From Hypanus sabinus (taxonomy: Eukaryota): a stretch of 64,000 nucleotides of DNA. Shown in pieces: positions 16,851 through 56,634 of this stretch. The DNA lies in assembly GCF_030144855.1 (NCBI RefSeq), contig NC_082706.1, positions 110,298,001-110,362,000 of the forward strand. Reading direction: 5' to 3'. Made by a program: the position numbers and the translations under genes. A model generated the notes under the pieces. The model saw only the letters and a program-made list of their open reading frames with translations. It did no database searches and had not been told where the DNA came from. Every line of letters starts with the position of its first letter. The stretch's first letter is position 1.

Positions 16851-17374
16851 CTGTCGGCCCTCCTTATCCGCGGGTTCTGCATGAGCGGATTCAGCCAACC
16901 TCAGATCGGGAAAACCCGGAAGTTGAGCATTGTTTGCCTCACATCTCGTTCGTTCGCTAATTGTGTTGTGAGCGAGAGGAAGGAGTTTAAGGCTAGTAAG
17001 GAATGGCTGGCTAGCTACGTAAAGTGCTACAGCCTCAAGAACTTAAAGATTACAGGAGAATCGGGATTGGCTGATGCCAAGGCAGCATCAGCATTCCCNN
17101 NNNNNNNNNNNNNNNNNNNNNNNNNNNNNNNNNNNNNNNNNNNNNNNNNNNNNNNNNNNNNNNNNNNNNNNNNNNNNNNNNNNNNNNNNNNNNNNNNNNN
17201 NNNNNNNNNNNNNNNNNNNNNNNNNNNNNNNNNNNNNNNNNNNNNNNNNNNNNNNNNNNNNNNNNNNNNNNNNNNNNNNNNNNNNNNNNNNNNNNNNNNN
17301 NNNNNNNNNNNNNNNNNNNNNNNNCGGGGGGGGGGACCCAGAACCAATCCCCCACCAATGAGGAGGGCCAACTG
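16851..17374 (+). mobile_element. Tigger/pogo-like DNA transposon derivative spanning the assembly gap
   Basis: TIRs CTGTCGGCCCTCC.../...GGAGGGCCAACTG|TA. Transposase fragment FKASKEWLASYVKCYSLKNLKITGESGLADAKAA (CENP-B-type HTH end). Confidence 0.8.
17099..17324. other. Assembly gap (226 N)
   Basis: Run of N. Confidence 1.
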
Positions 17375-27483: not shown

Positions 27484-28432
27484 TACATCACCTCTGAGTC
27501 CACAAGTCAACAAGGAAGATTGGTGACAGCGAAAGTAGATCTAGGAGGCAAGGGTAGATTAAATATACACAGTGAAGCTGAGGCAAGAGACAGTCATACA
27601 CGGATGTAAAACTGAGTGAACTGGAAGGTGCCACACCATCAGTCCACTCAAGTCTGTTTTTCAGTCTCATGGTTATAGCTGTCTAGACACTCTTTGGCCA
27701 TCAGCTCACTTCTTCAATGCCTGCTTCACTTGCTGACCCATTTTCAGAAAGACATTTGCTCAGCTTTTACAGTCAACACTGTAAATTTTCAAAGAACATA
27801 AAAGCATAGGAAGAGAAGCAGAAAGAGCCCATTCAGCACCTCATGCCTACTCTGTCACTTCAGCAGATCATGTCCAAATTTTACTTTACCACTACTTTCC
27901 TGCACAATTCCCCTGATTCAAATAATATCTAAAAATAAATCAATTCCTCAGTGGTCTCCTTAAATCAGAGTTGCTACACTCCAACTCTAGTGCATCATAT
28001 TCCAATTCACAATCTGCAGCTTCCCTGCAGCCTTGCACTCTGCATTATCTGATCTTTTCTCACCACCCTGAGCTGACAACATCTGCATACTTTGATTGAA
28101 TACCTGGCTTATTTCCTTCCAGGTCAGTGTGCTGAGCTTTTGCTTTCTGCCCGATCTATATGCTCCTCACTAGAAGGACCGTCACTAAACTTCAACATTA
28201 GAGCTTGGTCAGTACTATCTTGCCCTATAGCCAGGGCTACCTATATTCACTACACATTGACCTTGGTTACGCTTTCCCTCACTGGTAAAAGTTTTCCAGA
28301 GGTAACTTGTCAAAGGCGTTGTCAAATCCATAAAGATTCTTCTTGTTATTTTTCCTAAAAAAAAATCAGTTCACTCCAAGCTAAACACAGTCATTTGCAA
28401 AGCCTGAACAGTTGCTCAATTTAGATACAGTT

Positions 28433-28438
28433 TTTATT
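28433..28438 (-). terminator. Putative polyadenylation signal of the cathelicidin-like gene
   Basis: AATAAA on the - strand, 127 nt after the TAA stop. Confidence 0.55.
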
Positions 28439-28564
28439 TGAAGTAAGCATTATGGAAAAATTTGGAAGAATTTTCAAAGATGAAATTATTTTACTCAAGG
28501 GTCATCACTCTTTCCATATTCTTCCTTGGGACTTCCCCTTTCCAAATAAGTATCACAAAGGAAT

Positions 28565-28654
28565 TTAGCTTTTTTCTGTAGTATCAACTGTTCCAGGAGA
28601 AGATCCAAATGTGGAACTGGAAGTTTGTACTTGCCTTGCCAATACTGGCATATC
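28565..28654 (-). CDS. Cathelicidin/NGP-like protein, terminal coding exon 4
   Basis: Strong acceptor TTTTTTTTCTGTTTTATGTTGCAG|, phase 0, DMPVLARQVQTSSSTFGSSPGTVDTTEKS*. AATAAA lies about 130 nt downstream. It completes the canonical 4-exon cathelicidin layout, but is linked by position and splice signals rather than homology. Confidence 0.72.
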   Translation of the reverse strand, partial: DMPVLARQVQTSSSTFGSSPGTVDTTEKS

Positions 28655-29249
28655 CTGCAACATAAAACAGAAAAAAAAGCACTTATACCTCCTTAAAGCA
28701 AAGGAATTACAATGTTCAAATAACCATTCTACTGACTAGGATGTTGAAAACATCTAAACCCGGCACTGTGTGTTACATTAAATGATTTTAGCATCCATCC
28801 AGCACTAACTGCACTGCTTACTGTAAGGACATTGAAAGAAGACAATATTTTAGTCTCTAACTCCAGTTAAATCTTTTAATCACCATTTTATTTTTTTCCA
28901 TGGGAACTTACTACAGTAATTTGATTTATTTTCCTTCCAGATGCTCCCTGTGCTTCAAATTGTTCCCAGTATTCTTGCATGTGCAGTGCCTTATATCTCC
29001 TTCTATCAGGATCGGCCTTCTTTTCTTTTTCCTCTGTTTTCACTCAGCTCCCTTTACTTAATCTTTAGCGAGAAACAGTATGTTGTTTTATCCACTGGTT
29101 GTATCGTTCACTTTTCCTTGATCTCCATGTCATTACAGATACTCCCCACTCTTTCTCTCCTCCCCACTCTTTCTCTGCAACCTGAATTCTGTTTTTCCTT
29201 GTTCTAATGAAAGGTCTTCAACCTGAATTGTTAACTGAATTGTTAATTA

Positions 29250-29992
29250 TTAATCGCCAACAGGCTCTGGGACAGCTTCTTCCACCAGGCCATCAGACTG
29301 CTTAAATTGTGCTGACACAACTGTATTTTTATGTTATATTGACTGTCCTGTTGTACATACTATTTGTTATAAATTACTATAAATTGTACATTGCACATTT
29401 AGACAGAGATGTAACATAAAGATTTTTACTCCTCGTGTATATGAAGGACATAAGTAATAAAGTCAATTCAATTCCATTCAATTTTCTCTTGGCAGATGTT
29501 GATTCGCCTGATGGCTATTTCCAATATTTTCTGTTAATATTCCAGTTAAGATAAGAGGCATTACATAAAAGATAAGGCGCACTGTGGGTGATCAGATATT
29601 AGCAATCATAGAAAATTAGGCTGCAGAGGGTCGTAGTCTCGGACAGCTATACGATAGGCACAGCTCTCCCCACTGTCATTAAGAGGTGGTGCCTCAAGAA
29701 GACAAAATCGATTACTAAGGACCCCCACCATCCTGGACATGCTCTCTTCCCATTAGTATCATCAAGGAGGAGGAACGTGAGCCTGACTGACACTCAGCAA
29801 TTCAAAAACAGCCCCTTTGCAATCAGATATCTGAGTGCTCCAGAAACCCATGAACACTACCTTTTTACTCCTTTTTTGTACATTGTTTAATTTTGTAACT
29901 TATAATCATTTTAACGTTTTTTTTTCACTATACCCCTGCTGCAAAACAACAAATTTCACACCGCGTGAGTTATGATATCTGATTCTAGTTCT
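29250..29992 (+). mobile_element. Two Rex1/Babar-like 3' fragments
   Basis: SFFHQAIRLLK-type tail with (ATTCA)n, and an HHPGHALF tail. Confidence 0.55.
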
Positions 29993-30364
29993 GGCCAGGT
30001 AGACAATGAGAAATGACACATTTTGGGAGAGAGTGGGACCCAAATCATTTTAGAGATTGCAGTAGAGGTCTTGATTGAGGAGGCAGAAATAAGAAAGAAT
30101 CTTGTTTCCACAGGGAATGGTGGGGGGGGGGGGTGGAAGAGGGGTCGAGGCAGTATTTTCTCCAGAACATGAAAGCCCCTAAAAGCAAATACCCATGGTA
30201 ATAAATGCTAGCAAGCAATCCTGAGTGCTAAAAGTAGCTCCATGCCCTCAAGTGAGGACACACCCACATTGTTGCATATGCAGTCATTGCAATAGCTAAC
30301 TTTACTCTAAAATCAAAAACTGAGCTCATGAAAGGTCACAGACATGATGTCTGTTTCTCTCGCT

Positions 30365-30925
30365 GCTAAATAGTAAAGTGCAAGATCACAATGAGGTAGA
30401 TTGTGAGGCCAAGTGTCCAGCTTATCAAATAAGAGGTCCATCCGAGAGTCTGATAAGGGTGGGACAGAAGCTGCTTTTCAGCCTGGTGGTACATACTTCC
30501 AGGGTTTTGAAGCTATTGCCCGATGGAAAAGGGGAGATGGACGAATGTCCCGAGTGGGTGGCACTCTTAAATATGCTTGCTGTTTCACTGAGGCAGCGAG
30601 AAAAGAGTCCATAGATGGGAAGCTGGTTCCCGAGATGTACTGAGATACGTTCACAACTCTGCCGTTTCTTGCAGATCACATGTAGAGCAATTACCACAGC
30701 AAGCCACTATGCATCCAGTCAGAATGCTTTCTATAGCACAGCAATAGTAGGGTCAACAGGGAAATGCCAAATTAGTTTAGTATCCTGAGCAAATCCAGGT
30801 GTTGGTGACCAGGCTAGGCTGTTGCTGATGTTCGCATCAAGGAGTTTGAATCTCTTCACCCTCTCAAACTCAACACTATTGATGTAAACAGGAGCATGCG
30901 CACCAACTCCTTTTTGAAGTTAATG
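30365..30925 (-). mobile_element. Decayed Rex1/Babar-like LINE fragment
   Basis: RLKSSFCPTLIRL tail motif. Confidence 0.6.
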
Positions 30926-30943
30926 ACTAGTTCTTTTGGTTAG

Positions 30944-33040
30944 GTGACATTTATTAACCTGTTGTTGGTGGTGCACAAGAAGAATGTGGTAACCTGCCTC
31001 AAAGACTATTGTCCAGTAGCGCTTATATCCACTGTGATGAAATTCATTGAGAGGTTGGTCTTGAAATTTATCAACTCCTGCCTGTGCATCGATTTTGATC
31101 CGCTCCGTTGCCTACCATCACAACAAGCCAACAGCAGATACCATTTCATTGGCTCTTCACTCAACCCTAAAACGTCTGGACATTGAAGATGCATACATTT
31201 GACTTGCAGAGCTGCAGTCAATGTCATCATTTCCTCAAAACTAATCAATGAGCTCCAAGATCTCGGCCTCAATACCTCCTTCTGTAACTGGTCCTCAATT
31301 TCCTCACTTGTAGACCCCAGTCAGTTTGGATTAGCAACAATATATCCTCCACAATCACCATCAGCACAGGTACACCTCAAGGCTATGTGCTTGACACCTC
31401 TGCTCTATTCACTTTACACTTACAATTGTGAGGATAAGCACAACTCCAATGCCATATTCAAGTTTTCTGATAACACCATTGTTGTTGGCCAAATCAAAGG
31501 TGGTGATGAATCAGCATCCACAAGGGCAATTGGAAATCTGGCTGAGTTGTGTCTCTAAAAAACATCAGCAAAACCAAACAGCTGATTATTGACATCAGAC
31601 TGAGAAAACCAAAAGCCCATGAGCCAGTCCTCATTGGAGGATCAGAGGAGGAAAGGATCAGTAATTTCAAATTATCATTTCAGAGGATCTGCCCTGGGCC
31701 CAGCACATAAATGCCATTACAAAGAAGGCACAGCAGCACCTCTACTTTCTTACAAGTTTGCAAAGAGTCAACATGCCATCTACAACTTTGACAAACCTTT
31801 ACAGATGCACGTTGGAAAGTATACCAACTGGTTGCATCATGCCCTGGTATGGAAGCACCAATGCCTTTGACAGACAGACAGACATACCTTATTGATCCTG
31901 AGGGAAATTGGGTTTCGTTACAGTCGCACCAACCAAGAATAGTGCAGAAATCTAGCAATATAAAACCATAAATAACTAAATAATAATAAGTAAATAATGC
32001 CAAGTGGAAATTAGTCCAGGACCAACCTATTGGCTCAGGGTGTCTGACACTCCGAGGGAGGAGTGGTAAAGTTTGATGGCCACAGGTAGGAATGACTTCC
32101 TATGACGCTCAGTGTTGCATCTCGGTGGAATGAGTCTCTGGCTGAATGTACTCCTGTGCCTAACCAGTACATAATGGAGTGGATGGGAGACATTGTCCAA
32201 GATGGTATGCAACTTGGACAGCATCCTCTTTTCAGACACCACCATCAGAGAGTCCAGTTCCACCCCAACAACATCACTGGCCTTAGGAATGATTTTGTTG
32301 ATTCTGTTGGTGTCTGCTACCCTCAGCCTGCTGCCCCAGCACACAACAGCAAACATGATAGCACTGGCCACCACAGACTCGTAGAACATCCTCATCATCG
32401 TCCGGCAGATGTTAAAGGACCTCAGTCTCCTCAGGAAATAGAGACGGCTCTGACCCTTCTTGTAGACAGCCTCAGTGTTCTTTGACCAGTCCAGTTTATT
32501 GTCAATAACAGTAAATAGTAAAGCTTACAAAAAGTAGTAGATACAGCCTAATCCATCAACGGTAAAGCTCTCCCCACCACGGAGCTCATCTACTGTCACA
32601 GGAAAGCAGCACCCATCACCAAGGATTTCCACTATCCAGGTCATGCTCTATTCTTGCTGCTGCCATCAGGAAGGAGGCACAGGAGACTTAGGTCCCACAC
32701 CACCAGCTCCAGGAACAGTTATTACGCCTCAACCATTGAGCTCCTGAAACAGAGTGGATAACTTCACTCACTCCAACACTAATTTCACAACCTATGGACT
32801 CAATTTTAAGAACTCTACAACTCATGTTCTCAACATTTATTGTTTATTTAATTATTATTGTTCTGTATATTTTTGTATTGACACAATTTGTTGCCTTTTG
32901 CACGTTGGTTGTCTCGTGTGCAGTTTTGCATTGTTTCTATTGTGTTTCTTTGTATTTACTGTGACTGCCTGCAAGAAAGTGAATCTTAGGGTAGTGTATG
33001 GTGACATTTATGTAGTTCGATAACAAATCTACTTTGAACA
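30944..33040 (+). mobile_element. Decayed Rex1/Babar-like LINE with nested younger copy
   Basis: CLKDYCPVALISTVMKFIERLV and PLLYSLYT...KFSD; 3' tail as in 1-592. Confidence 0.8.
31870..32506 (-). mobile_element. Young Rex1-like 3' fragment (nested)
   Basis: Near-identical to 22243-22877; (CTGT)n tail. Confidence 0.9.
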
Positions 33041-34144
33041 CTGAGAGAATAGTTATTGTCACAAAACTCATTATCTCCCTGTACTCCAAATCATTGTTAT
33101 TTAAATATGGCCCTTTACGGTTGTATCATCTGCAAACTTGTTAGTAGAGTTGGAGCAGTATCTGGTCATGAAGGCTTGAGTGTACAGGGAGCAGATTAGG
33201 AGGCTCAGGATGGTACCTTGTGGGGCACCAATGTTTCAAATAATCATGGTGGAGGTGTTGCTATCTGTTCTTACTGATTGCAGTCTGGTGGTCAGAAAGT
33301 CAAGTTGAGATACTCTGTATTTCTTTCTGCTGACGCTGCCTGACTTTTTTAAGTGTTGGCATTCATGCAGATTTATGGCAAATGGGAATCCAAACCAAAA
33401 CTGTAGTTGCTGGAAACACTCAGCAGGTGAGGCAACATCAGTGAAAGAGAGGTTAGTGTTTAAAGTCAAAGGCCCTTCATCAGAACTGAGAAAGAGAGAA
33501 AATAACTCATGGGATTTTAACCTGAAATATTAACTCTGTTTCTCCTTCCATCGATGTTGCCTGACTGCTGTGTATTGCCAGCATCTTAAATTTCTTTTTC
33601 AGCTTTCTCAATACCTAGTTTTAATTTTTCTTCTGTTTATTATCGAAAATAATGATATTAACCAAGGTATCAAGGAATCCTTCTTATCAGTATTATTATG
33701 TTATCTTTTAACTTCAGCTGAGAGGACAGAGCTGCAGTTGGTTGTACATGAAAGGTGGCATCTTCCACAGTTTAGGGTCCCTTGGTGATACATTAGACTA
33801 TTTATGTTTGTGTTCAGGACCTTGAGTTGATCATAAACCCATACTCCTACTATTCAACGCTGAGTGTGCTACCAATGATAATGGGTCCTTAAAAGAGTTG
33901 ATGGGCTTGGTCCTTGAATATCTGACAAATGGCATGTTACACTTTTCTTTCTTGAATTACAAAATGCATCTCAAAGCCAGTTAAAACTCCATTGTTAAAC
34001 CGAATTATTTTCCTCTGAATTGCAACAATGCCCTTACTTCAAAATTACTTCATTGTTGGTGGAATACGTAATGATTTCCTGAAGGTGCGAAAAGTTCCAT
34101 AAAAATGTTAATTGTCTTTCTCTTCATTGGTGTATTTGTCTTAC

Positions 34145-34231
34145 CTGAAAAACTTTGCAACGGACAGGCTGGAATCTAAGGGACGTGGAGGGAGGTCTTT
34201 GAAAAGCCTTTACAGTACATGACTTCATAAT
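34145..34231 (-). CDS. Cathelicidin/NGP-like protein, coding exon 3
   Basis: Acceptor TTTTCTCCTCACCAG|, 87 nt, IMKSCTVKAFQRPPSTSLRFQPVRCKVFQ (second Cys pair; cf. cathelicidin LVKxC...C). Donor CAG|GTAAGA. Phase 0 is the only open frame. Confidence 0.88.
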
Positions 34232-35071
34232 CTGGTGAGGAGAAAATTATATTATTTTAACAGATTTCCCTAAGTGGCTGAAATTATTGTTACAGTGCAA
34301 ACTAAGATTTAGTAAGGAGTAGGCAATGGCTATGTGCATTACAAAACAGCCCAGCATACCAAATACTTGCTCTTATTCTACATTCTTAGCTGTATTAATA
34401 TGTTTCAGCTCCCCTCCATCAAGATTGGAGATAAAATTGTCCGAGATTCCTCTCCAAATATTATTCAGTTAACTAAGTCACAGATTTGACATTTCTAATC
34501 AAATTTTGGTGACCATGCAATTATCTTTTTTTCAGTTTCCAAACTGTGGAAGTTTATTGTCTATCTCTACTGTCATGAGAAGATGAAGCGTGTGACATTT
34601 TCAACTCCTAAGCTCTTTGGTCAAGTACTACTACTTTGCTGTGATGGAAGAGCTTACAAGAACTTGGGTGCAACATGGTTGAAGGATGATAAATTATGAT
34701 ATATATACAAATCAGAATAGTGTGTATGTTGGAGAGGAACTTCAGGCTGAAGGTGAACATGCTGATTTTACTTTTCTAGATGTTATGTGACAGGACTGGA
34801 ATGTGTTGTCAAAGAGCTATGGTGAGTTGCTTCACTGCCTCCTGAGGTTGCATACACTACGGAACAGGAACAGGCACAGATGTAAAAGCTCAAGTAACTA
34901 GAAAATTGGAGACACACTTGCTGATTGTATGGAGGCAGACTCCCCTCTACATTTGACTTAACTGGGGCTAAGCTTCACAAGAAGTTTATTAAATTTAAAT
35001 ACCCATCACAATTTTATGATTGGAGGTAGATAAGCTAACAAAACTTGGAAGACTGTAGCAAATGCATTTAC

Positions 35072-35182
35072 CCCACCAGCCATGAAAGAACAATCAGCTG
35101 CATCATTGCTTGTCACATTATGATTACAGACGGTCTCCTGCATATGGAAGCTAACGTCATAGATGGTCCATTGAACTCCATT
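35072..35182 (-). CDS. Cathelicidin/NGP-like protein, coding exon 2
   Basis: Acceptor TTTGTTTCATTTCATCTGCAG|, 111 nt, NGVQWTIYDVSFHMQETVCNHNVTSNDAADCSFMAGG. It matches the cathelin SFxVKETxC...DCxF motif. Donor GGG|GTAAAT, phase 0. Confidence 0.9.
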
Positions 35183-35346
35183 CTGCAGATGAAATGAAAC
35201 AAACAAAGAATTACTCTGAGTAAGAATTAGTGCATGAGGATAGGTCCAGAAAAGACCATTATAAAACCTGGAAAGGTCAGGGTCGTACCACCATAAAGCT
35301 TTGAATATTGTCTGCATTAATCAATGCTTCATCTTGCATAATCTTT

Positions 35347-38300
35347 TTTTTAAATTCTCTTATTAAATTTTCAAATAGGTTACAGAAAGAAAAAAGAAAA
35401 TTATCGACCCTTCCCCCCCTCCCCTTAACCCCTCCCCCCTAACATATCCCTATAGAGAAAAAAAAGAAGAAAAAAGAAAGAAAGAAAGAATGCCTGGATT
35501 TCGGAAGATCCCCACACGCTCCATGGAGTTCATAATAGCTTTAATATGTATATTTATTTCTTTCCCCAGATAACCAATAATTTTATCTTTGGAGCACCTA
35601 TATATTTAATCCTATATTTTGTAAATAAGAGCACCAAATTTTCAGGAATATTTCATATTTATCTCTTAAATTATGTAATTTTTTCAAGTGGAATGCAGCT
35701 AAAAATTTCATTCTTCCAACGATCTATACTTAAGTATGAATCCGATTTCCAAGTAACTGCAATAGCCTTTTTGGCCACTGCCAATGCAATTTTTATGAAT
35801 TCTTTCTGATAATTATTCAATTTGGATTTTGATTTTATCCCTTCAATATTGCCTAGTAAAAATAATATTGGATTGTGTGGAAGTTGTATTCCAATAATTT
35901 GTTCCAATAAACCTCTTAAATTTGTCCAAAAAGGTTGAATTTTAGAACATGACCAAGTAGAGTGTAAAAAGTATCAATTTCTTGATTACATTGAAAACAT
36001 TGATCAGATAAATTTGAGTTTAGTCTATTTATTTTTTGTGGTGTAATATATATTTAATGTAAAAAGTTATATTGTACTAACCTTAGTCGAACATTTATTG
36101 TATTTGTCATACTGTCAAGACATAACCTTGACCAACTTGTTTCATCAATTTTAATATTCAAATCAGTTTACCATTTTTGTCTTGACTTATGAATTCCTTG
36201 TTTAATTGCTTGTTTTTGAATCAAATTATACATACCAGAAATATTTTTTAAATTTTTCCTTTATGAATTAAGGTTTCTATTTCATTAGGTTTCAGCAATA
36301 ACATTGTTTGACCCAGTTTATCTCTTAAATAAGCCCTTAATTGGAAATAACAGAAAAGAGTGTTATTTGATATTTTATATTTATTCTTTAATTGGTCAAC
36401 TGACATTAATATACCTCCTTCAAAACGGTCTCCTATATAACTAATCCCTTTGTGAAACCAGTTATATAAAAGTTGATTATCCATTGTAAAAGGGATGTTT
36501 ATTTTGAATTAAAGGTCTCTTTGCTAATAAAGGTTTCTTTATCTCATCATCAACATTTATCTTATTCCATAAATCAATCAAATATTTTAGCATAGGAGAT
36601 TCTTTCTTTTCCCGTATCCATTTAGATTCCCATTTATATATAAACTTCTGGTATATTTTCTCCTATTTCGTCTAATTCTATTCTAATCCATGCCGGGTTT
36701 ATCTTCATCAAAAAAAGATACAATAAATCGAAGTTGATTTGCTTTGTAATAATTCTTAAAATTTGGTAATTGTAACCCTCCTAGGTCAAATTTCCATGTC
36801 AATTTTCCCAACGATATTCCTGACATCTTACCTTTCTAAAGGAATTTCCTCATACATTTATTTAAATCTCGAAAAAATTTCTGTGGTAATTGTATTGGTA
36901 ATGTTTGGAATAAATATTGTAATCTAGGGAATATATTCATTTTTACAGCATTGACTCTACCTATTAGTGTTATTGGTAACATCATCCATTTATCAAGATC
37001 CTCTTGAATTTTTTTCAATAATGGCAAATAATTTATTTTATATAAATTCTTTATGTCATTATCAACTCTTATACCTAAATACTTTATACCGTTTATCAGC
37101 CATCTAATTTGAGTTATTAATCGACATTGACTATAATCGTAAGGGATAGAATTTCACTTTTATCCCAATTTATTTTGTACCCTGATATTTTCCCATATTC
37201 TTCCAATCTGGAAGATAATTTACGCAACGATTGTAATGGGTTAGTTAGATAAATCAGAACACCATCAGCAAATAAGTTAATCTTATATTCCTCCTGATTA
37301 ACTCTGAAACCCATAATATCTGAGTCAGTTCTAATTAATTCAGCTAATGGTTCTATCACCAACACAAGTAAAGCAGGTGATAATGGACAACCTTGTCTAG
37401 TTGACCTTGTTAACTGAAATGATGTTGAAATTTGGCCATTTGTCGCCACTTTAGCTTTGGGGTTAGTATTTAAGGTTTTAATCCATTTTATAAAAGATAC
37501 TCCTAATCCATATTTTTCCAATACCTTAAATAAAAAATCCCATTCCAATCTATCAAGTGCTTTTACTGTATCCAAAGCAACTGCTGCACTCATTTCTTCC
37601 CTCTTCTGTGCCAAATGAATTATGCTAAGTAACCGAGTTACATTATCTGCCGATTGTCTATTTTTAATAAATCCTGTTTGGTCCATGTGTATTAATTTTG
37701 GTAAGTATTTAGATAATCTGTTAGATAAAATCTTTGCTATTATTTTATAATCCATGTTCAACAAAGAAATAGGTCTATATGATGTTGGTTTTAAAAGATA
37801 GGAATAGGTCTATATGATGTTGGTCTTTTTTTGTCAATACTATTAAAATAGCTGTCAAAAAAGATTCTGGAAGTTTATGCATTCTTTCCGCTTGGTGTAT
37901 TAGCTCCATAAAAGGAGGAATTAATAAATCTTTAAACTTTTTGTAAAATTCAGGTGGAAAACCATCTTCTCCTGGAGATTTATTACTCTGAAGTGATCCT
38001 AGAGCTTCTTTGACCTCTTTTAATGTAAAAGGCACATCTAATCCCTTCTGTTCTTCCAAATTCAATTTTGGGAGAGTTATTTGTGATAAAAACCTTTCTA
38101 TCTCAACAATATCATTTCGTGATTCTGATTGATACAATTCAGAATAAAAATTTTTAAAGGTTTCATTAATTTCTAAAGGTTTATAACTAATTTTATTTAC
38201 ACTTGTTCTAATTGCATTTATCGTTTTGGAAGCCTGGTCTGTTTTTATCTGCAAGCAAGAATCTTGTGTGATCTTTCACCTAGTTCATAATATCTCTGTT

Positions 38301-40509
38301 CAGTTCTCATAATTGCTTTTTTCTGTTCGGTATGTCTGAAGTGTATTATGTTGTAGTTTCTTTGTTTTTCTTCTCTCATATATCTTTGAGATTCTTTTTC
38401 TAATTTTGTAATCTCTTTTTCCAATTGATCTATTTCTACCATATATTCCTTCTTAATTTTAGAAGTATAACTTATTATCTTGCATCTCAAATATGCCTTC
38501 ATCGCTTCCCATAATATAAATTTAACATCAACTGAATGTGAGTTTGTATCTAAAAAAAACTGAATGTTTTTTCATAAAATCACAAAAATCTTGACATTTT
38601 AATAATATTGAATTAAATCTCCATCTGTAAATCAATTCCTCCTTATCCATCATTATCATTGTCATTATCAAGGGGGAATGATCTGACAATATTCTTGCTT
38701 TATGTTCCATATTTTTCACTCTGACCTAAATATTCGCTGATAGTAAAAAAAAATCTATTCTTGAATAAGTTTTATGTCTATTTGAATAAAATGAATAATC
38801 TCTCTTGGGTTAATTCTCCATATATCAATCAAATTTAAATCTTTCATCAATGATAAAGTTAATTTTGCTACTTTTGGTTTTGTGACAACCTTTGTTGACC
38901 TATCTAAAACTGGGTCTAGACAAAAGTTAAAGTCTCCACCTATTAATATTTTATTGTGTGCGTCAGCCAAATTCAAAAAAGCCTCCTGTATAAATTTTAC
39001 ATCTTTTCATTTGGTGCATAAATATTCATAGGAGTCCATAGTTCTGAAAAGATTTGACAATGTATAATTACATATCTTCCTGCAGAATCAATTAATACAT
39101 TTTGTATTTTAATTGGTAAAGTTTTGTTGACCAAAATTGGAACTCCCCTTGCTTTTGAATTAAATGAAGCTGCTCTAACATTTCCGACCCAATCTCTCTT
39201 TAATTTCTGATGTTCTATCTCTGTTAAATGTGTTTCTTGTATAAAAGCTATATCTATTTTCATTTTCTTAATGCATGTTAAAATTCTTTTTCTTTTCACC
39301 AGTCCATTAAGCCTATTAACATTAAAACTTTAAAAATTCAGTAAATTAGTCATTATTTTTAACGGGGTTACTCTAGTCTATAATAATACGTAATATTTCA
39401 ACTCTCATAGTACCTTGGAGAATTATTGTAAAATTCTCCATGTTGCTATGTGTCTCCCCTCCGATCATCCAGGCAAAGAAAGAAGGATAGATTATAAAGA
39501 AAAAAAAAACAAAAAAAAACCCTGCTAATGTTGTGAATGAAAAAAAACACAACATTACCCCTCTCTGTTGTGCAGTTCATGGCAATTGCCATGATTACAC
39601 ACGTGAATCCCGTAGCGATCGATCCGAAGTTTCCCCAGCTGCCCCGTAACATGAAAAAAGTATATATAAAATAAGAAAAAATAATATCACTACTCTCATT
39701 TAATATTTCTCAAATTTTTACCTTTCTCCCCCTGTATTATACAATTAAAAGTATATTTAAATATTCTTGTCTTTAATTTCCATCAGCTCACTTCAGTGTC
39801 CCCGTCTTTATCTTTAATCTGTTTCACTTTTAAATCTTTACTGTGACTAGTGAATATTTGGGAGTTCTTGTGCAAACTGCTCTGCATCCCAATGATCAGT
39901 AAAAAATCTTCTTTTTCTGTCATCCAAAAAAATTGTCAGTGTTGTCGGGTGGCGCAATATAAATTTATAACCCTTTTCCCATAAAACATTTTTCGCTGAG
40001 TTAAATTCCTTCTTTCTCTTCAAAAGGTCATAACTTATATCAGGATAGAAAAGAACTGCTTTCCCTTCTATCATCAATGGCTCATTTCTCTTTCTGGCAT
40101 ACTGGGCAGCCGCCTTCAGGATCTTTTCTTTATCTTGATATCTTAAGCATTTTATCAAGATTGGTCGTGGTTTTGGATCAGGTTGGGGTTTTAACCTTAA
40201 GGCTCTGTGGACCCTTTTGATTTCAATCAACTGGGTTCCTTCTTCCATTTCCAAATTTACCGGGATCCATTTTTGAAAAAATTTTATTGGATCCTCGCCC
40301 TCTGTCCCTTCTTTAAGACCAACAATTTTAATGTTATTTCATCTATTAAAAATTTCAAGCACGTCTATTTTTTCCAACAGTCGTTTTCTTTCTGATGTCC
40401 AGGCAAGAACATTATCTTCCATTTTATTCACTCTCTCAATAGTGTCTCCCGTTATTTCTTCCAGGTTTTTAACTTTCTTGTCCATTTTCTCCTGTTTTTT
40501 CACCATTTT
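35347..40509 (-). mobile_element. L1-clade LINE, about 5.2 kb, 5'-truncated in ORF1, frameshifted
   Basis: ORF1 (RVHRALR...PRPILI...FYPDIS), APE endonuclease (IAFIQETH, NIYAPN, GGDFN, SDHSP), RT (TRQGCPLSP, LFADG), A-tail. 16-bp TSD ATCTTGCATAATCTTT at 35331-35346 / 40510-40525. Confidence 0.95.
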
Positions 40510-41644
40510 ATCTTGCATAATCTTTGTCCTATATTCTTATTGGTAGTTTGAGAAAATGCTGGGGAATGTCCTGAATCTATTCTGAGTATCTCCCCTGTTG
40601 TCTTTATTTGTTGGGTCTAGTTTTCTCGTCCATAAAATTAAATAGGGTGAAAATTCACACAATGAGGTAAATGGACAGCTAATTTAATAGTCAATAGTCC
40701 TACTATTGCCCAAAGGTAAAATCAACCCTGATATCTTCCTAGATAACACTTCCATGATGCCGATACCTATATTTGACACAGGTCCTCCTGAAAGACTAAC
40801 TCGAGTACATGGCACATGAGCTGTAAAAGGCAAGCATATCCATGCAGTTGCAAAGTACTGCTTCTATCAGAAAAAACTGCTAAAAGTTTTAGTACATGGT
40901 ACCAATTGCTTCAGCAGTACACACATCAATTTGCTTCCAAATTTATACATCAATGGAAAATATATACTTTTGTGCTACTCCTGACATCTGGCAAATTAGT
41001 TAGAACAGTGGGGCCTAAGTCACAGGCTCATACTAGAATGAGGCATGAGAGGCAGATTGTGATGTCCCGATTCACACAAAATTGTTTTGAGAGAAGCATC
41101 GTTAAATTTGAAATTGGACCATGAAATTCTTGGTAACACTATGTTAATTGCACTCTGGCAAATTTGAAGTTTAGCAGCGTGAAAATAACAGTGCTTAATA
41201 ATACCAGATTAATTTAAATGGATCTTGGCTGATTTGTACTTAATCAGAGGCAGGTTTAACTGTATACATATCTTCAATTCTTATTAGTAGTATCAAACGG
41301 AGTTTCAGAGTGGATGGAGGAGATACAAAATACCAGAATCTGAAATTAGCTGAAAATTGAACAATGGTTCCAGCTTCGTTGCCTTCTTGTTGCTCAGTAT
41401 TGCTGGCTGGCCAGAAGAATGGCATAAGGGGAAAGTGCAAACTACCCGGGCATTGAATATGGGATGACGGTCTCTGGCTTACACTTATCCAGAGTGGCTT
41501 CCTACACTTATTTGATCAAGAATTTCCAACTTCAGTGTAGATGAAGTAAAATTTATGAGATTGAATTTTGCTTTGTTTTCCATTAGCCAACCATATTTGC
41601 TAGGTTATTACTCTTTTGCAATGCAGTGTAAGTATTTCATTGCA

Positions 41645-42603
41645 TGGCAGAATTAAACAAGACTGGGAAAAAGAGCTTCAATATACTATATCAACAGAAA
41701 AATGGGAAAAAATTCTACAAATGGTTAATTCTTCTTCTATATGTGCTAAACATACTTTAATACAATTTAAGGTCGTACATAGAGCTCATATGTCTAAAGA
41801 TAAGCTTGCTCAATTTTACTCCCATATTAACCCTCAATGTGACAGATGTCACTCAGAAGTTGCTTCATTGACCCACATGTTTTGGTCATGTCCCACCTTA
41901 TATAACTATTGGAAGGACATATTTGCTATCATTTCCTCAGTTTGGAATATTGATTTACAACCCCATTTTATTACTGCAATTTTTGGTATACCAAATGAGG
42001 ATAGTAGTCGACTTTCCCCTTCAATTAGACGAATGATTGCTTTTACAACTCTAATGGCTAGGAGGTCTATATTACAAAATTGGAAAGAAGTAAACCCTCC
42101 TACCACGTTTCAGTGGTTCTCTCAAACTATTTCTTGTTTGAGCTTAGAAAAAATTAGAAGTACTATTTTTGATCCATCAATTAAGTTTGAAGAAACTTGG
42201 GGACCGTTTATTCGACATTTTCATGTGAGTTAATTTGACCTCTTCCGGACCTTTTCTCTTTTTATCCTTGTTCTGGTATGGAGTTCCGGAGTTCTTGACA
42301 CTATCATGTACATATAAACTTTTATTATTGCCCATGTTAGTCTAGGTTTATTTTTTTTTCAATATATATTTTTTTATTGTATTTTTTATATATTTTTTTT
42401 CTTTTCTTTCTTTTAGTGATTATCCTTTTTCATGTATAATCAATATAGGTTTGACTGATTATTATATGATGTTTTTTTACTAACATTTTAATAAGATATT
42501 GATATCTTATCACTATTTCAATTTCAAGCCTAATGTATTTACAATCTATTTAATATTATGTTATGTTATTTTTTATATATGAAAATCAATAAAAAGATTG
42601 AAA
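41645..42603 (+). mobile_element. L1-clade LINE 3' fragment (different lineage)
   Basis: CDRC...HMFWSC zinc knuckle, AATAAA and A-tail. 15-bp TSD AAG(T/A)ATTTCATTGCA at 41630-41644 / 42604-42618. Confidence 0.92.
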
Positions 42604-42862
42604 AAGAATTTCATTGCAATCTTTTCATAATGCCACTGGGAGACTTCTTGGCCCTTTTGGGCAGAGAAATTCTAACACCAGTCACAAAACAGCCCTCATT
42701 AAGGAGATGCTTCTGTGCTGGTTAGGTCAACACTGTTTTAACGGGAACAGGCTGCCGATAGAATTGGGCCCCACACATTACTTTGATTGCTTTGATTCAT
42801 TGGCAGAGAATATAAGACTTGCCCAGCCATTAAATACCTATTTATTGAGACCCACACATTAC

Positions 42863-43039
42863 CTTAAGTCTAGCAGAAGTAACCTGAAGCAGCTTAAATA
42901 GGTTGACTGGTGACCAGCGCTTGTTGTACCGTGCAACAGCTGCAGAAGCCACCTGTCTACCAGTGAAAGTGGAAGAAGGAACACTGGCAGTCAAAGTAAG
43001 GAATCCAACAAGCAAAATAATCTTCTGCAACATCTTCAT
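42863..43039 (-). CDS. Cathelicidin/NGP-like secreted protein, coding exon 1 (signal peptide + cathelin/cystatin helix)
   Basis: ATG at 43039 gives MKMLQKIILLVGFLTLTASVPSSTFTGRQVASAAVARYNKRWSPVNLFKLLQVTSARLK (59 aa). It has a hydrophobic signal peptide, then AVARYN...NLFKLL resembling cathelin AVxxxN...NLYRLL. Donor AAG|GTAATG, phase 0. Confidence 0.88.
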
Positions 43040-43210
43040 AATACCTTTCACGAACAACCAGAAGGTATGTACTCTGATGCAAGCAAAGCAAATGAGTGAC
43101 TTAACTCACAAAAAAGGCAAATGTCATTGAAAATGGTTAATTATTAATACTTCAGTTTGCTGATATTTTTGTTGTCAACCTGGTCATTCCTCAGATTGCA
43201 AAATTTGTTT
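43040..43210 (-). promoter_or_regulatory. Putative proximal promoter of the cathelicidin-like gene (HNF1 and C/EBP motifs)
   Basis: GGTTAATTATTAAT (43135-43148, HNF1-like), TGATGCAA (43075-43082, C/EBP-ATF-like) and ATTGCAAAAT (43195-43204, C/EBP-like), all within 170 nt of the ATG. Confidence 0.45.
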
Positions 43211-43639
43211 TTCTGAACTTTTTGTGCCTCTTAAATCCTAACATTTGCAACTGTATTTGTAAATAGTTGCTTTCATACTTTCCAGTGTGGAAATGATTCT
43301 CAAGCTAAAGTCTGGACTAGTAACATGAAAGTGATTTCAAACCCCATCTACTATAGTTTGAGAACTTAAATTCTGCTGAAATATGTAAATTAAAAAGACA
43401 GCATCAGTAAAAGCTACTGGAGTAATTTCAAATAGCTTGTTCACCAATCTCTTTTGGAAAGGAAACCTACTTTTTATGCAATACAACATTCTGTAGCCTT
43501 GCGACTTATACTTGTTTCCCTGAAAAAACAGGCTGTTGACTTAGATGTCTGTGCCCCAGCATTACCGACTTCTTCCCTGACAATCACATATTCTGACAGA
43601 CTTGAAGTCACCGAGGAAGATCAGTTTGCATCATGACAG

Positions 43640-48365: not shown

Positions 48366-48419
48366 ATGTTTCAAGAACTGAATAATATTCTTAATACAAC
48401 TCCCGAAACGTGTGAGCAG
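48366..48419 (+). CDS. ELP6: Elongator complex protein 6, coding exon 1
   Basis: MFQELNNILNTTPETCEQ matches the recalled human ELP6 N-terminus MFVELNNLLNTTPDRAEQ. Donor CAG|GTAATG, phase 0. It lies in a CpG-rich promoter region. Confidence 0.95.
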
Positions 48420-56555: not shown

Positions 56556-56634
56556 GGAATAAGTGTACTCCTTTGTGACAAGCAGACTGATGGAGGTTTC
56601 CTTGTGCATCATTTCCTTTCTTTTTATCTCAAAG
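56556..56634 (+). CDS. ELP6: Elongator complex protein 6, coding exon 2 (gene continues beyond window)
   Basis: Acceptor TTTTCCTTTTATTTTCTGAAACAG|, GISVLLCDKQTDGGFLVHHFLSFYLK(G) versus human GKLTLLCDAKTDGSFLVHHFLSFYLK. Donor AAG|GTGAGT, phase 1. Exon 3 was not found before 64000. Confidence 0.96.

Follow-up and report, generated by a model that had tools for sequence, protein, structure and literature searches.

A cathelicidin-family gene without a cationic terminal peptide in the stingray Hypanus sabinus and other elasmobranchs

Gene structure at the locus

We analysed 64,000 nucleotides of the Hypanus sabinus genome (RefSeq assembly GCF_030144855.1, contig NC_082706.1, positions 110,298,001 to 110,362,000), hereafter the window, which hold a four-exon gene on the minus strand with a coding sequence (CDS) running from position 43039 to 28565. 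An earlier note, made from the raw sequence, had rebuilt this gene and interpreted it as a cathelicidin with inverted charges, that is, a cationic domain followed by an acidic tail. The gene was rebuilt correctly and is already in the public RefSeq annotation. Its spliced product has 154 amino acids and is identical to XP_059801055.1, labelled “cathelicidin-related antimicrobial peptide Na_CRAMP-like”, with an annotated CDS range of 14,475 bp that is the same as 28565-43039. The absence of a cationic terminal peptide in a cathelicidin-family gene, already suspected in that note, is true of every orthologue found. As for the interpretation as a whole, it is partly supported by our results.

All introns are bordered by AG/GT and in phase 0 (coordinates of all features are given in Table 1). 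The N-terminus is signal-like in sequence: after two Lys come about 12 hydrophobic residues and then T-A-S. An NVT sequon is encoded by exon 2. We sought a second paralogue in the window and found none, leaving a single copy, and the family exon 4 has no further match in the 64 kb.

Family membership and predicted fold

The whole protein matches the Pfam family Cathelicidins (PF00666) with 42.5 bits against a cut-off of 21 (E 8.5e-11), and all six family members scanned, one partial isoform included, pass with 33-53 bits. The match to Pfam Cystatin is weaker, with 25.9 bits against a cut-off of 22.2. Single exons give weak yet collinear matches to Cathelicidins, exon 1 at profile positions 6-33 and exon 2 at 46-73, and when compared alone with solved structures their matches are also weak. 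The family profile reaches the human cathelin-like domain (4EYC) at 4.4e-9, the protegrin domains at about 1e-7 and cystatins at 4e-5 or weaker.

The AlphaFold model has a mean predicted local distance difference test (pLDDT) score of 73.7, and 65 of its residues score at least 90. Its helix (residues 27-42) and four strands (48-60, 65-77, 98-107 and 120-123) form the cathelin fold. The closest structural matches in the PDB are 4EYC and cystatins, and the closest Swiss-Prot models are ruminant and pig cathelicidins, followed by rabbit p15A/B, mouse NGP and Spp24. Charge, tail and conservation were compared in a ten-species alignment (Hypanus and nine orthologues), in which the four cysteines C78, C90, C101 and C121 are invariant; they presumably pair into two disulfides that hold the domain.

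Skate, sawfish, bamboo shark and sevengill shark have the same exon layout, and across the five species the first three exons measure 177-180, 108-111 and 87-96 nt. Cathelicidins are four-exon genes in which exons 1-3 encode the signal peptide and the domain, and exon 4 the C-terminal part (PMC3978490). Judged by profile matches and predicted fold, the gene is a member of the cathelicidin family.

Other assignments were tried and rejected. The QxVxG loop and the PW loop, with which type-2 cystatin inhibitors touch papain-like proteases, are absent in all 11 sequences checked, against a canonical cystatin inhibitor. For Spp24 (SPP2), the PF07448 score is 14.1 bits against a cut-off of 26, no SxE motif is present and the neighbour is ELP6, rather than the nme9/vps8/sh3bp4 locus. 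One sawfish isoform is nevertheless labelled “secreted phosphoprotein 24-like”. The spp2 genes are expanded in cartilaginous fish and lie at the nme9/vps8/sh3bp4 locus (PMC13188829); the catshark orthologue of the stingray gene, LOC119972334, is not among them, being of another family at another locus. Orthology to chemerin (RARRES2) was rejected as well, since the family profile misses every chemerin chain even when E-values up to 10 are allowed, and the protein has four cysteines.

Orthologues and rate of evolution

Word-based homologue searches, with the open reading frame (ORF) of exon 1 and with the whole protein, returned nothing beyond the protein itself. Orthologues were gathered by an exhaustive phmmer search with exon 1 plus a profile search, which gave one gene per species in Pristis, Leucoraja, two Chiloscyllium, Heterodontus, Heptranchias, Mustelus, two Scyliorhinus and Cetorhinus. 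The gene tree splits rays from sharks with full support and is consistent with a single copy per species.

A cationic C-terminal peptide was found in none of the ten species and in no orthologue isoform. Judging from the species sampled, this “peptide-less” architecture characterises elasmobranchs as a whole. The ratio of nonsynonymous to synonymous substitution rates (dN/dS) is 0.41-1.13 between pairs, with 1.13 for Hypanus against Pristis. For the Hypanus branch, three-taxon estimates derived from pairwise distances give approximately 1.2-1.4.

Some irregular copies and isoforms were also seen. Leucoraja erinacea has a second copy of exon 3 (L001:3093-3194) with 88% protein identity, some 7 kb upstream of where the skate gene starts its coding sequence; it may stem from partial duplication or from an error of assembly. 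The annotated isoforms X2 of Pristis and X2 of Heterodontus end within exon 3 or skip it, dropping two of the four cysteines.

Charge pattern of the domain

The charge counts given in the earlier note are correct. For every signal cleavage point from residue 17 to 26, mature exon 1 contributes 7 K/R without any D/E (net +7); exon 2 contributes 4 D/E without any K/R (net -4), and exon 3 contributes 6 K/R, again without D/E (net +6). The domain, taken as residues 20-125 or 20-132, has a net charge of +9 and an isoelectric point of 10.05. The segregation of charge by exon is beyond chance, with none of the 14 basic residues in exon 2 (p ~0.004; Fisher p 0.0013). The exon-4 peptide contains 1 K, 1 R, 2 D and 1 E, and S/T fill 11 of the 29 positions. 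To call this tail acidic is right in sign, but the word overstates a charge of only -1.

Among the orthologues, the signs +/-/+ of the first three exons are kept in 10 of 10 species and the domain is net positive in all of them, but +9 is found only in Hypanus. The other nine domains have only +1 to +5, so a strongly cationic domain does not hold as a family feature. Basic residues number 14 in Hypanus and 14-18 in the orthologues, and 9 of those 14 are K/R in at least 5 of the 9 orthologues, in line with the expectation that they would be kept. Acidic residues number 5 in Hypanus against 11-14. At eight positions with a D/E majority (29, 60, 63, 81, 88, 91, 94 and 95) the Hypanus residue is uncharged, while five consensus basic sites were lost and others gained. 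The charge excess of Hypanus thus arises because about eight consensus acidic sites were lost, not because basic ones were gained. The bias of these losses toward acidic over basic consensus sites is not significant (p = 0.11).

In the core aligned to solved cathelin domains, Hypanus has +6, the other elasmobranchs 0 to +3, and human and pig -1. The extra charge of the stingray is no evidence for the ancestral “inverted” mode that had been put forward as a possibility. From these comparisons, the +9 domain reflects acidic residues lost in one lineage, in a gene that evolves fast, and not the mode of action of the family.

LAR motif and C-terminal tail

Past the last strand we found a conserved motif, in its fuller form [DE]xx[VI/M][LIM]AR. 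Its stingray version, PVLAR, had been singled out as a plausible processing site, and the element stands well in the comparison: neither A131 nor R132 varies among the ten species, and the linker around the motif is modelled with low confidence and is probably flexible. The pLDDT is below 50 from residue 128 in the stingray model, and the LAR stretch is of low confidence in both the stingray and the horn-shark models. In the Scyliorhinus proteins, two copies of the motif follow each other at residues ~130-145 (PVIAR...PVLAR or PVMAR), which looks like a duplication of the linker.

The tails after LAR are 3-24 amino acids long, with a net charge of -2 to +1, and cannot be aligned between lineages. 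In skate, sawfish, sevengill shark and bamboo shark, only 3-5 residues remain. Pristis and Heptranchias have a homologous TAA five codons past LAR, Chiloscyllium also stops five codons past it, and Leucoraja has a TGA after three codons. Compared with the DNA of Pristis, Leucoraja and Heptranchias, Hypanus lacks 11 nt right after the motif and has 5 additional nt about 40 nt further on. Because of these indels, the Ser/Thr-rich stretch of Hypanus reads a conserved TCC/ACA-rich segment in another frame. The same segment lies beyond the stop codon in the three other species, and only the final residues of the Hypanus tail regain the frame that gives ...STDTT in skate DNA, past the skate stop.

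The change may have gone either way: the long-tailed sharks, for which proteins only were compared, have a Ser-Ser pair as far from LAR as in the stingray. Whichever the direction, the sequences indicate that the tail was lost or replaced repeatedly and is not a conserved acidic regulator, the role once suggested for it. A phosphorylated tail is not borne out either, as Hypanus has no SxE phosphorylation motif.

The 11-nt difference itself is apparently common to the stingray and the galeomorph sharks (again from proteins only) and missing in sawfish, skate and sevengill shark, against the species tree. The stretches compared were window 28568-28633 and L003:16079-16200, L001:20196-20320 and L004:15860-15985. 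This discordance could come from a recurrent deletion or an old polymorphism.

Exon 4 and the 3' untranslated region (UTR) are orthologous between stingray and skate, with 69% identity over 182 nt (blastn), and no other block of intron 3 is conserved. A different, cationic terminal exon had been named as a finding that would speak against the original interpretation. At the sequence level, none that is conserved or convincing was found in intron 3 or downstream. A 49-codon open frame is present at 28498-28644 on the minus strand, +1 relative to exon 4, and is reached from an AG 10 nt inside this exon. Its product has a net charge of 0 and is no hidden cationic peptide.

Promoter and neighbouring genes

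A proximal block upstream of the start codon is conserved in five species. Within it, TATTAATAATTAAC is identical in Hypanus, Pristis, Leucoraja, Chiloscyllium and Heptranchias, and it matches the HNF1 palindrome consensus GTTAATNATTAAC (PMC12647356) at 12 of 13 positions. Matches to this palindrome with at most one mismatch number 3 in 64 kb, against 0.41 expected. HNF1 may bind at TATTAATAATTAAC. Two further elements, GTTCAGAAAAACAA and TTTTGCAAT, resemble what we take to be forkhead and C/EBP consensus sites. A block of this composition would point to expression in liver, kidney or gut. The product would then be a protein of plasma or epithelia, not a propeptide stored in granules.

The upstream neighbour, ELP6, is arranged head-to-head at 5.3 kb in Hypanus and 7.5 kb in Pristis. 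In human, ELP6 and CAMP are both located in 3p21.31. The divergent upstream neighbour in Scyliorhinus canicula and Cetorhinus maximus is a protein kinase of 509-537 amino acids and not ELP6; a kinase in two sharks against ELP6 in two rays indicates a rearrangement beside the gene.

Introns 1 and 3 contain long endonuclease/reverse-transcriptase ORF fragments similar to long interspersed nuclear elements (36839-39329 and 32027-32524, minus strand), and similar fragments are dispersed over the remaining window. A run of 226 N, masked or a gap, occupies 17099-17324.

Table 1. Features of the cathelicidin-family gene and its surroundings in the Hypanus sabinus window.
Feature	Position	Strand	Description
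Exon 1 CDS	42863..43039	-	59 aa, 177 nt; putative signal peptide (about residues 1-19), N-terminal helix, first cathelin strand
Exon 2 CDS	35072..35182	-	37 aa; strand 65-77 (second of first strand pair), acidic loop, C78 and C90
Exon 3 CDS	34145..34231	-	29 aa; basic strands, C101 and C121
Exon 4 CDS	28565..28654	-	29 aa and TAA stop (28565-28567)
Codons for P-V-L-A-R	28634..28648	-	conserved [VI/M][LIM]AR motif
Lineage-specific tail	28568..28633	-	22 aa, Ser/Thr-rich, net -1
CDS end and 3'UTR conserved with Leucoraja	28407..28584	-	blastn; AATAAA at 28433-28438
Conserved proximal promoter block (~110 bp)	43110..43222	-	upstream of start codon; blastn to Leucoraja and Chiloscyllium; five-species alignment
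Invariant TATTAATAATTAAC	43136..43149	-	HNF1-type site
Conserved GTTCAGAAAAACAA and TTTTGCAAT	43195..43218	-	near-invariant in five-species alignment
ELP6 exon 1	48366..48419	+	translation MFQELNNILNTTPETCEQ, then GT; annotated ELP6 (PF09807)
ELP6 exon 2	56556..56634	+	AG/GT-bounded ORF piece GISVLLCDKQTDGGFLVHHFLSFYLK

Discussion

Our preferred explanation, to which we give a probability of roughly 60%, is that the product of the gene is a secreted protein with the cathelin fold and without a cationic antimicrobial peptide. It would act as one entire domain with its conserved Arg-containing end, and the tail could be lost. The product would be secreted through its signal-like N-terminus and would fold into one helix and four strands with the four invariant cysteines. 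By analogy with mammalian NGP and rabbit p15, the folded domain may be the working part. NGP and p15 are active without cleavage (PMC3978490). The LAR motif could be a trypsin-type trimming site or a functional C-terminal end in itself. The tail, in turn, would be a tolerated extension, made in Hypanus by frame-shifting indels.

Several results weigh against this explanation. The dN/dS values show the domain to be under weak constraint, and its function may be decaying or shifting. Five shark species have tails rich in S/T/N, and in four of these the tail contains an N-glycosylation sequon; some benefit of the tail is therefore possible. The identities of the promoter sites are consensus matches, and the catshark orthologue LOC119972334 is absent from the published data searched for its expression.

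Drift in the stingray lineage under relaxed constraint would make the charge shift and the new tail neutral by-products, with a function possibly being lost. We hold this unlikely as the explanation, even if the high ratios of the Hypanus-Pristis pair and the Hypanus branch and the frame-shifted tail fit it. In the same direction, a near-invariant loop of the type CDFKxDG is CSFMAGG in Hypanus, and consensus sites of both kinds were lost, 8 of 11 acidic and 5 of 14 basic. However, the ORF is intact with all splice sites canonical, 22 of 22 family-invariant residues are retained (the four cysteines, A131 and R132 included), and the promoter block is preserved. The branch leading to skate is just as long, and high dN/dS is seen family-wide. 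A functional design, in which a cationic domain binds lipopolysaccharide, heparin or membranes and is masked by an acidic, glycosylated or phosphorylated tail until cut at PVLAR, agrees with the correct counts, with net positive domains in ten of ten species, none of them with a cationic tail, and with a LAR motif conserved in a disordered stretch. We nonetheless find it very unlikely given the low charge of the orthologue domains, tails that are as variable as described and reduced to 3-5 residues in four species, and a Hypanus tail that comes from frame-shifting indels and lacks the SxE motif. A net charge of -1 is also insufficient to mask +9.

The gene may instead encode a chemerin-like pro-protein of the cathelicidin locus, a role that elasmobranchs either acquired or retained: liver-made, basic and inactive in circulation. 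Plasma serine proteases would cut it after the conserved Arg and expose the ...[VI/M][LIM]AR end, which in the stingray, as ...VLAR, would bind a receptor or partner and be switched off by carboxypeptidases. It would then work as a switch in the manner of chemerin or the anaphylatoxins and not as the precursor of an antimicrobial peptide. By language-model features, the nearest named clusters in the ESM Atlas carry the label “Retinoic acid receptor responder protein 2” (scores 0.94 and 0.93), the chemerin-GPR1 complex is a fold match at rank 23, the HNF1-type site is conserved, and in four species only 3-5 residues separate the motif from the C-terminus. With cathelin domains matched at 1e-9 to 1e-7, no chemerin chain reached and four cysteines rather than six, we consider this switch quite unlikely. 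Finally, a classical cathelicidin whose cationic terminal exon is unannotated or in another frame is nearly refuted. Intron 3 measures 5.5 kb, is repeat-rich and contains an AG-preceded phase-0 ORF at 32968 with net +7, but this ORF is not conserved, and use of the alternative acceptor within exon 4 yields a tail of 49 aa whose net charge is 0. Exon 4 and the 3'UTR have orthologous counterparts in other species, and no orthologue isoform has a cationic end.

Compared with classical cathelicidins (the CAMP/LL-37 precursor, protegrins and avian CATH1-3), the elasmobranch protein shares the PF00666 domain, the four cysteines and the cathelin fold, together with four coding exons of which the last encodes the post-domain part (PMC3978490). 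A basic residue soon after the domain could act as a cleavage site in both. It differs in that exon 4 carries no cationic peptide in ten of ten species, in a domain core of 0 to +6 instead of the -1 of human and pig, in the fast evolution of the domain and in a promoter with an HNF1-type site.

NGP and rabbit p15A/B, which are proteins of neutrophil granules, also have the cathelin fold and no separate antimicrobial peptide, and are fold matches at ranks 11, 12 and 18. NGPs are conserved over their whole length (PMC3978490), whereas the elasmobranch tail past LAR is unalignable between lineages. NGPs arose within mammals, and any likeness to the elasmobranch protein is therefore convergent. 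Chemerin, a protein with six cysteines and C-terminal processing, is likewise a small secreted basic cystatin-fold protein in which the last few C-terminal residues matter. Against this likeness stand the lack of detectable sequence-profile similarity, the four cysteines and the ELP6 neighbourhood. NGP and p15 would be the closest functional precedents, with chemerin more speculative.

What defines cathelicidins is a conserved pro-domain with a variable cationic peptide attached to it. The elasmobranch orthologue keeps a short Arg-containing motif and probably a liver-type promoter. Cartilaginous fish are marked as having cathelicidins in a 2009 survey (PMC2784779), and we found no papers on what their cathelicidin genes encode. 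If the proposal of a protease-exposed switch were true, sharks and rays would be without any cathelicidin peptides, and the cleavable linker would predate the peptide released from it in other vertebrates. An independent function of the human cathelin domain is still disputed. The gene described here makes two questions testable, namely whether cathelicidin peptides are lacking in sharks and rays and whether the cathelin domain can act alone. The stingray domain, with its extra +4 to +8, offers a natural variant for probing how important the charge of the domain is.

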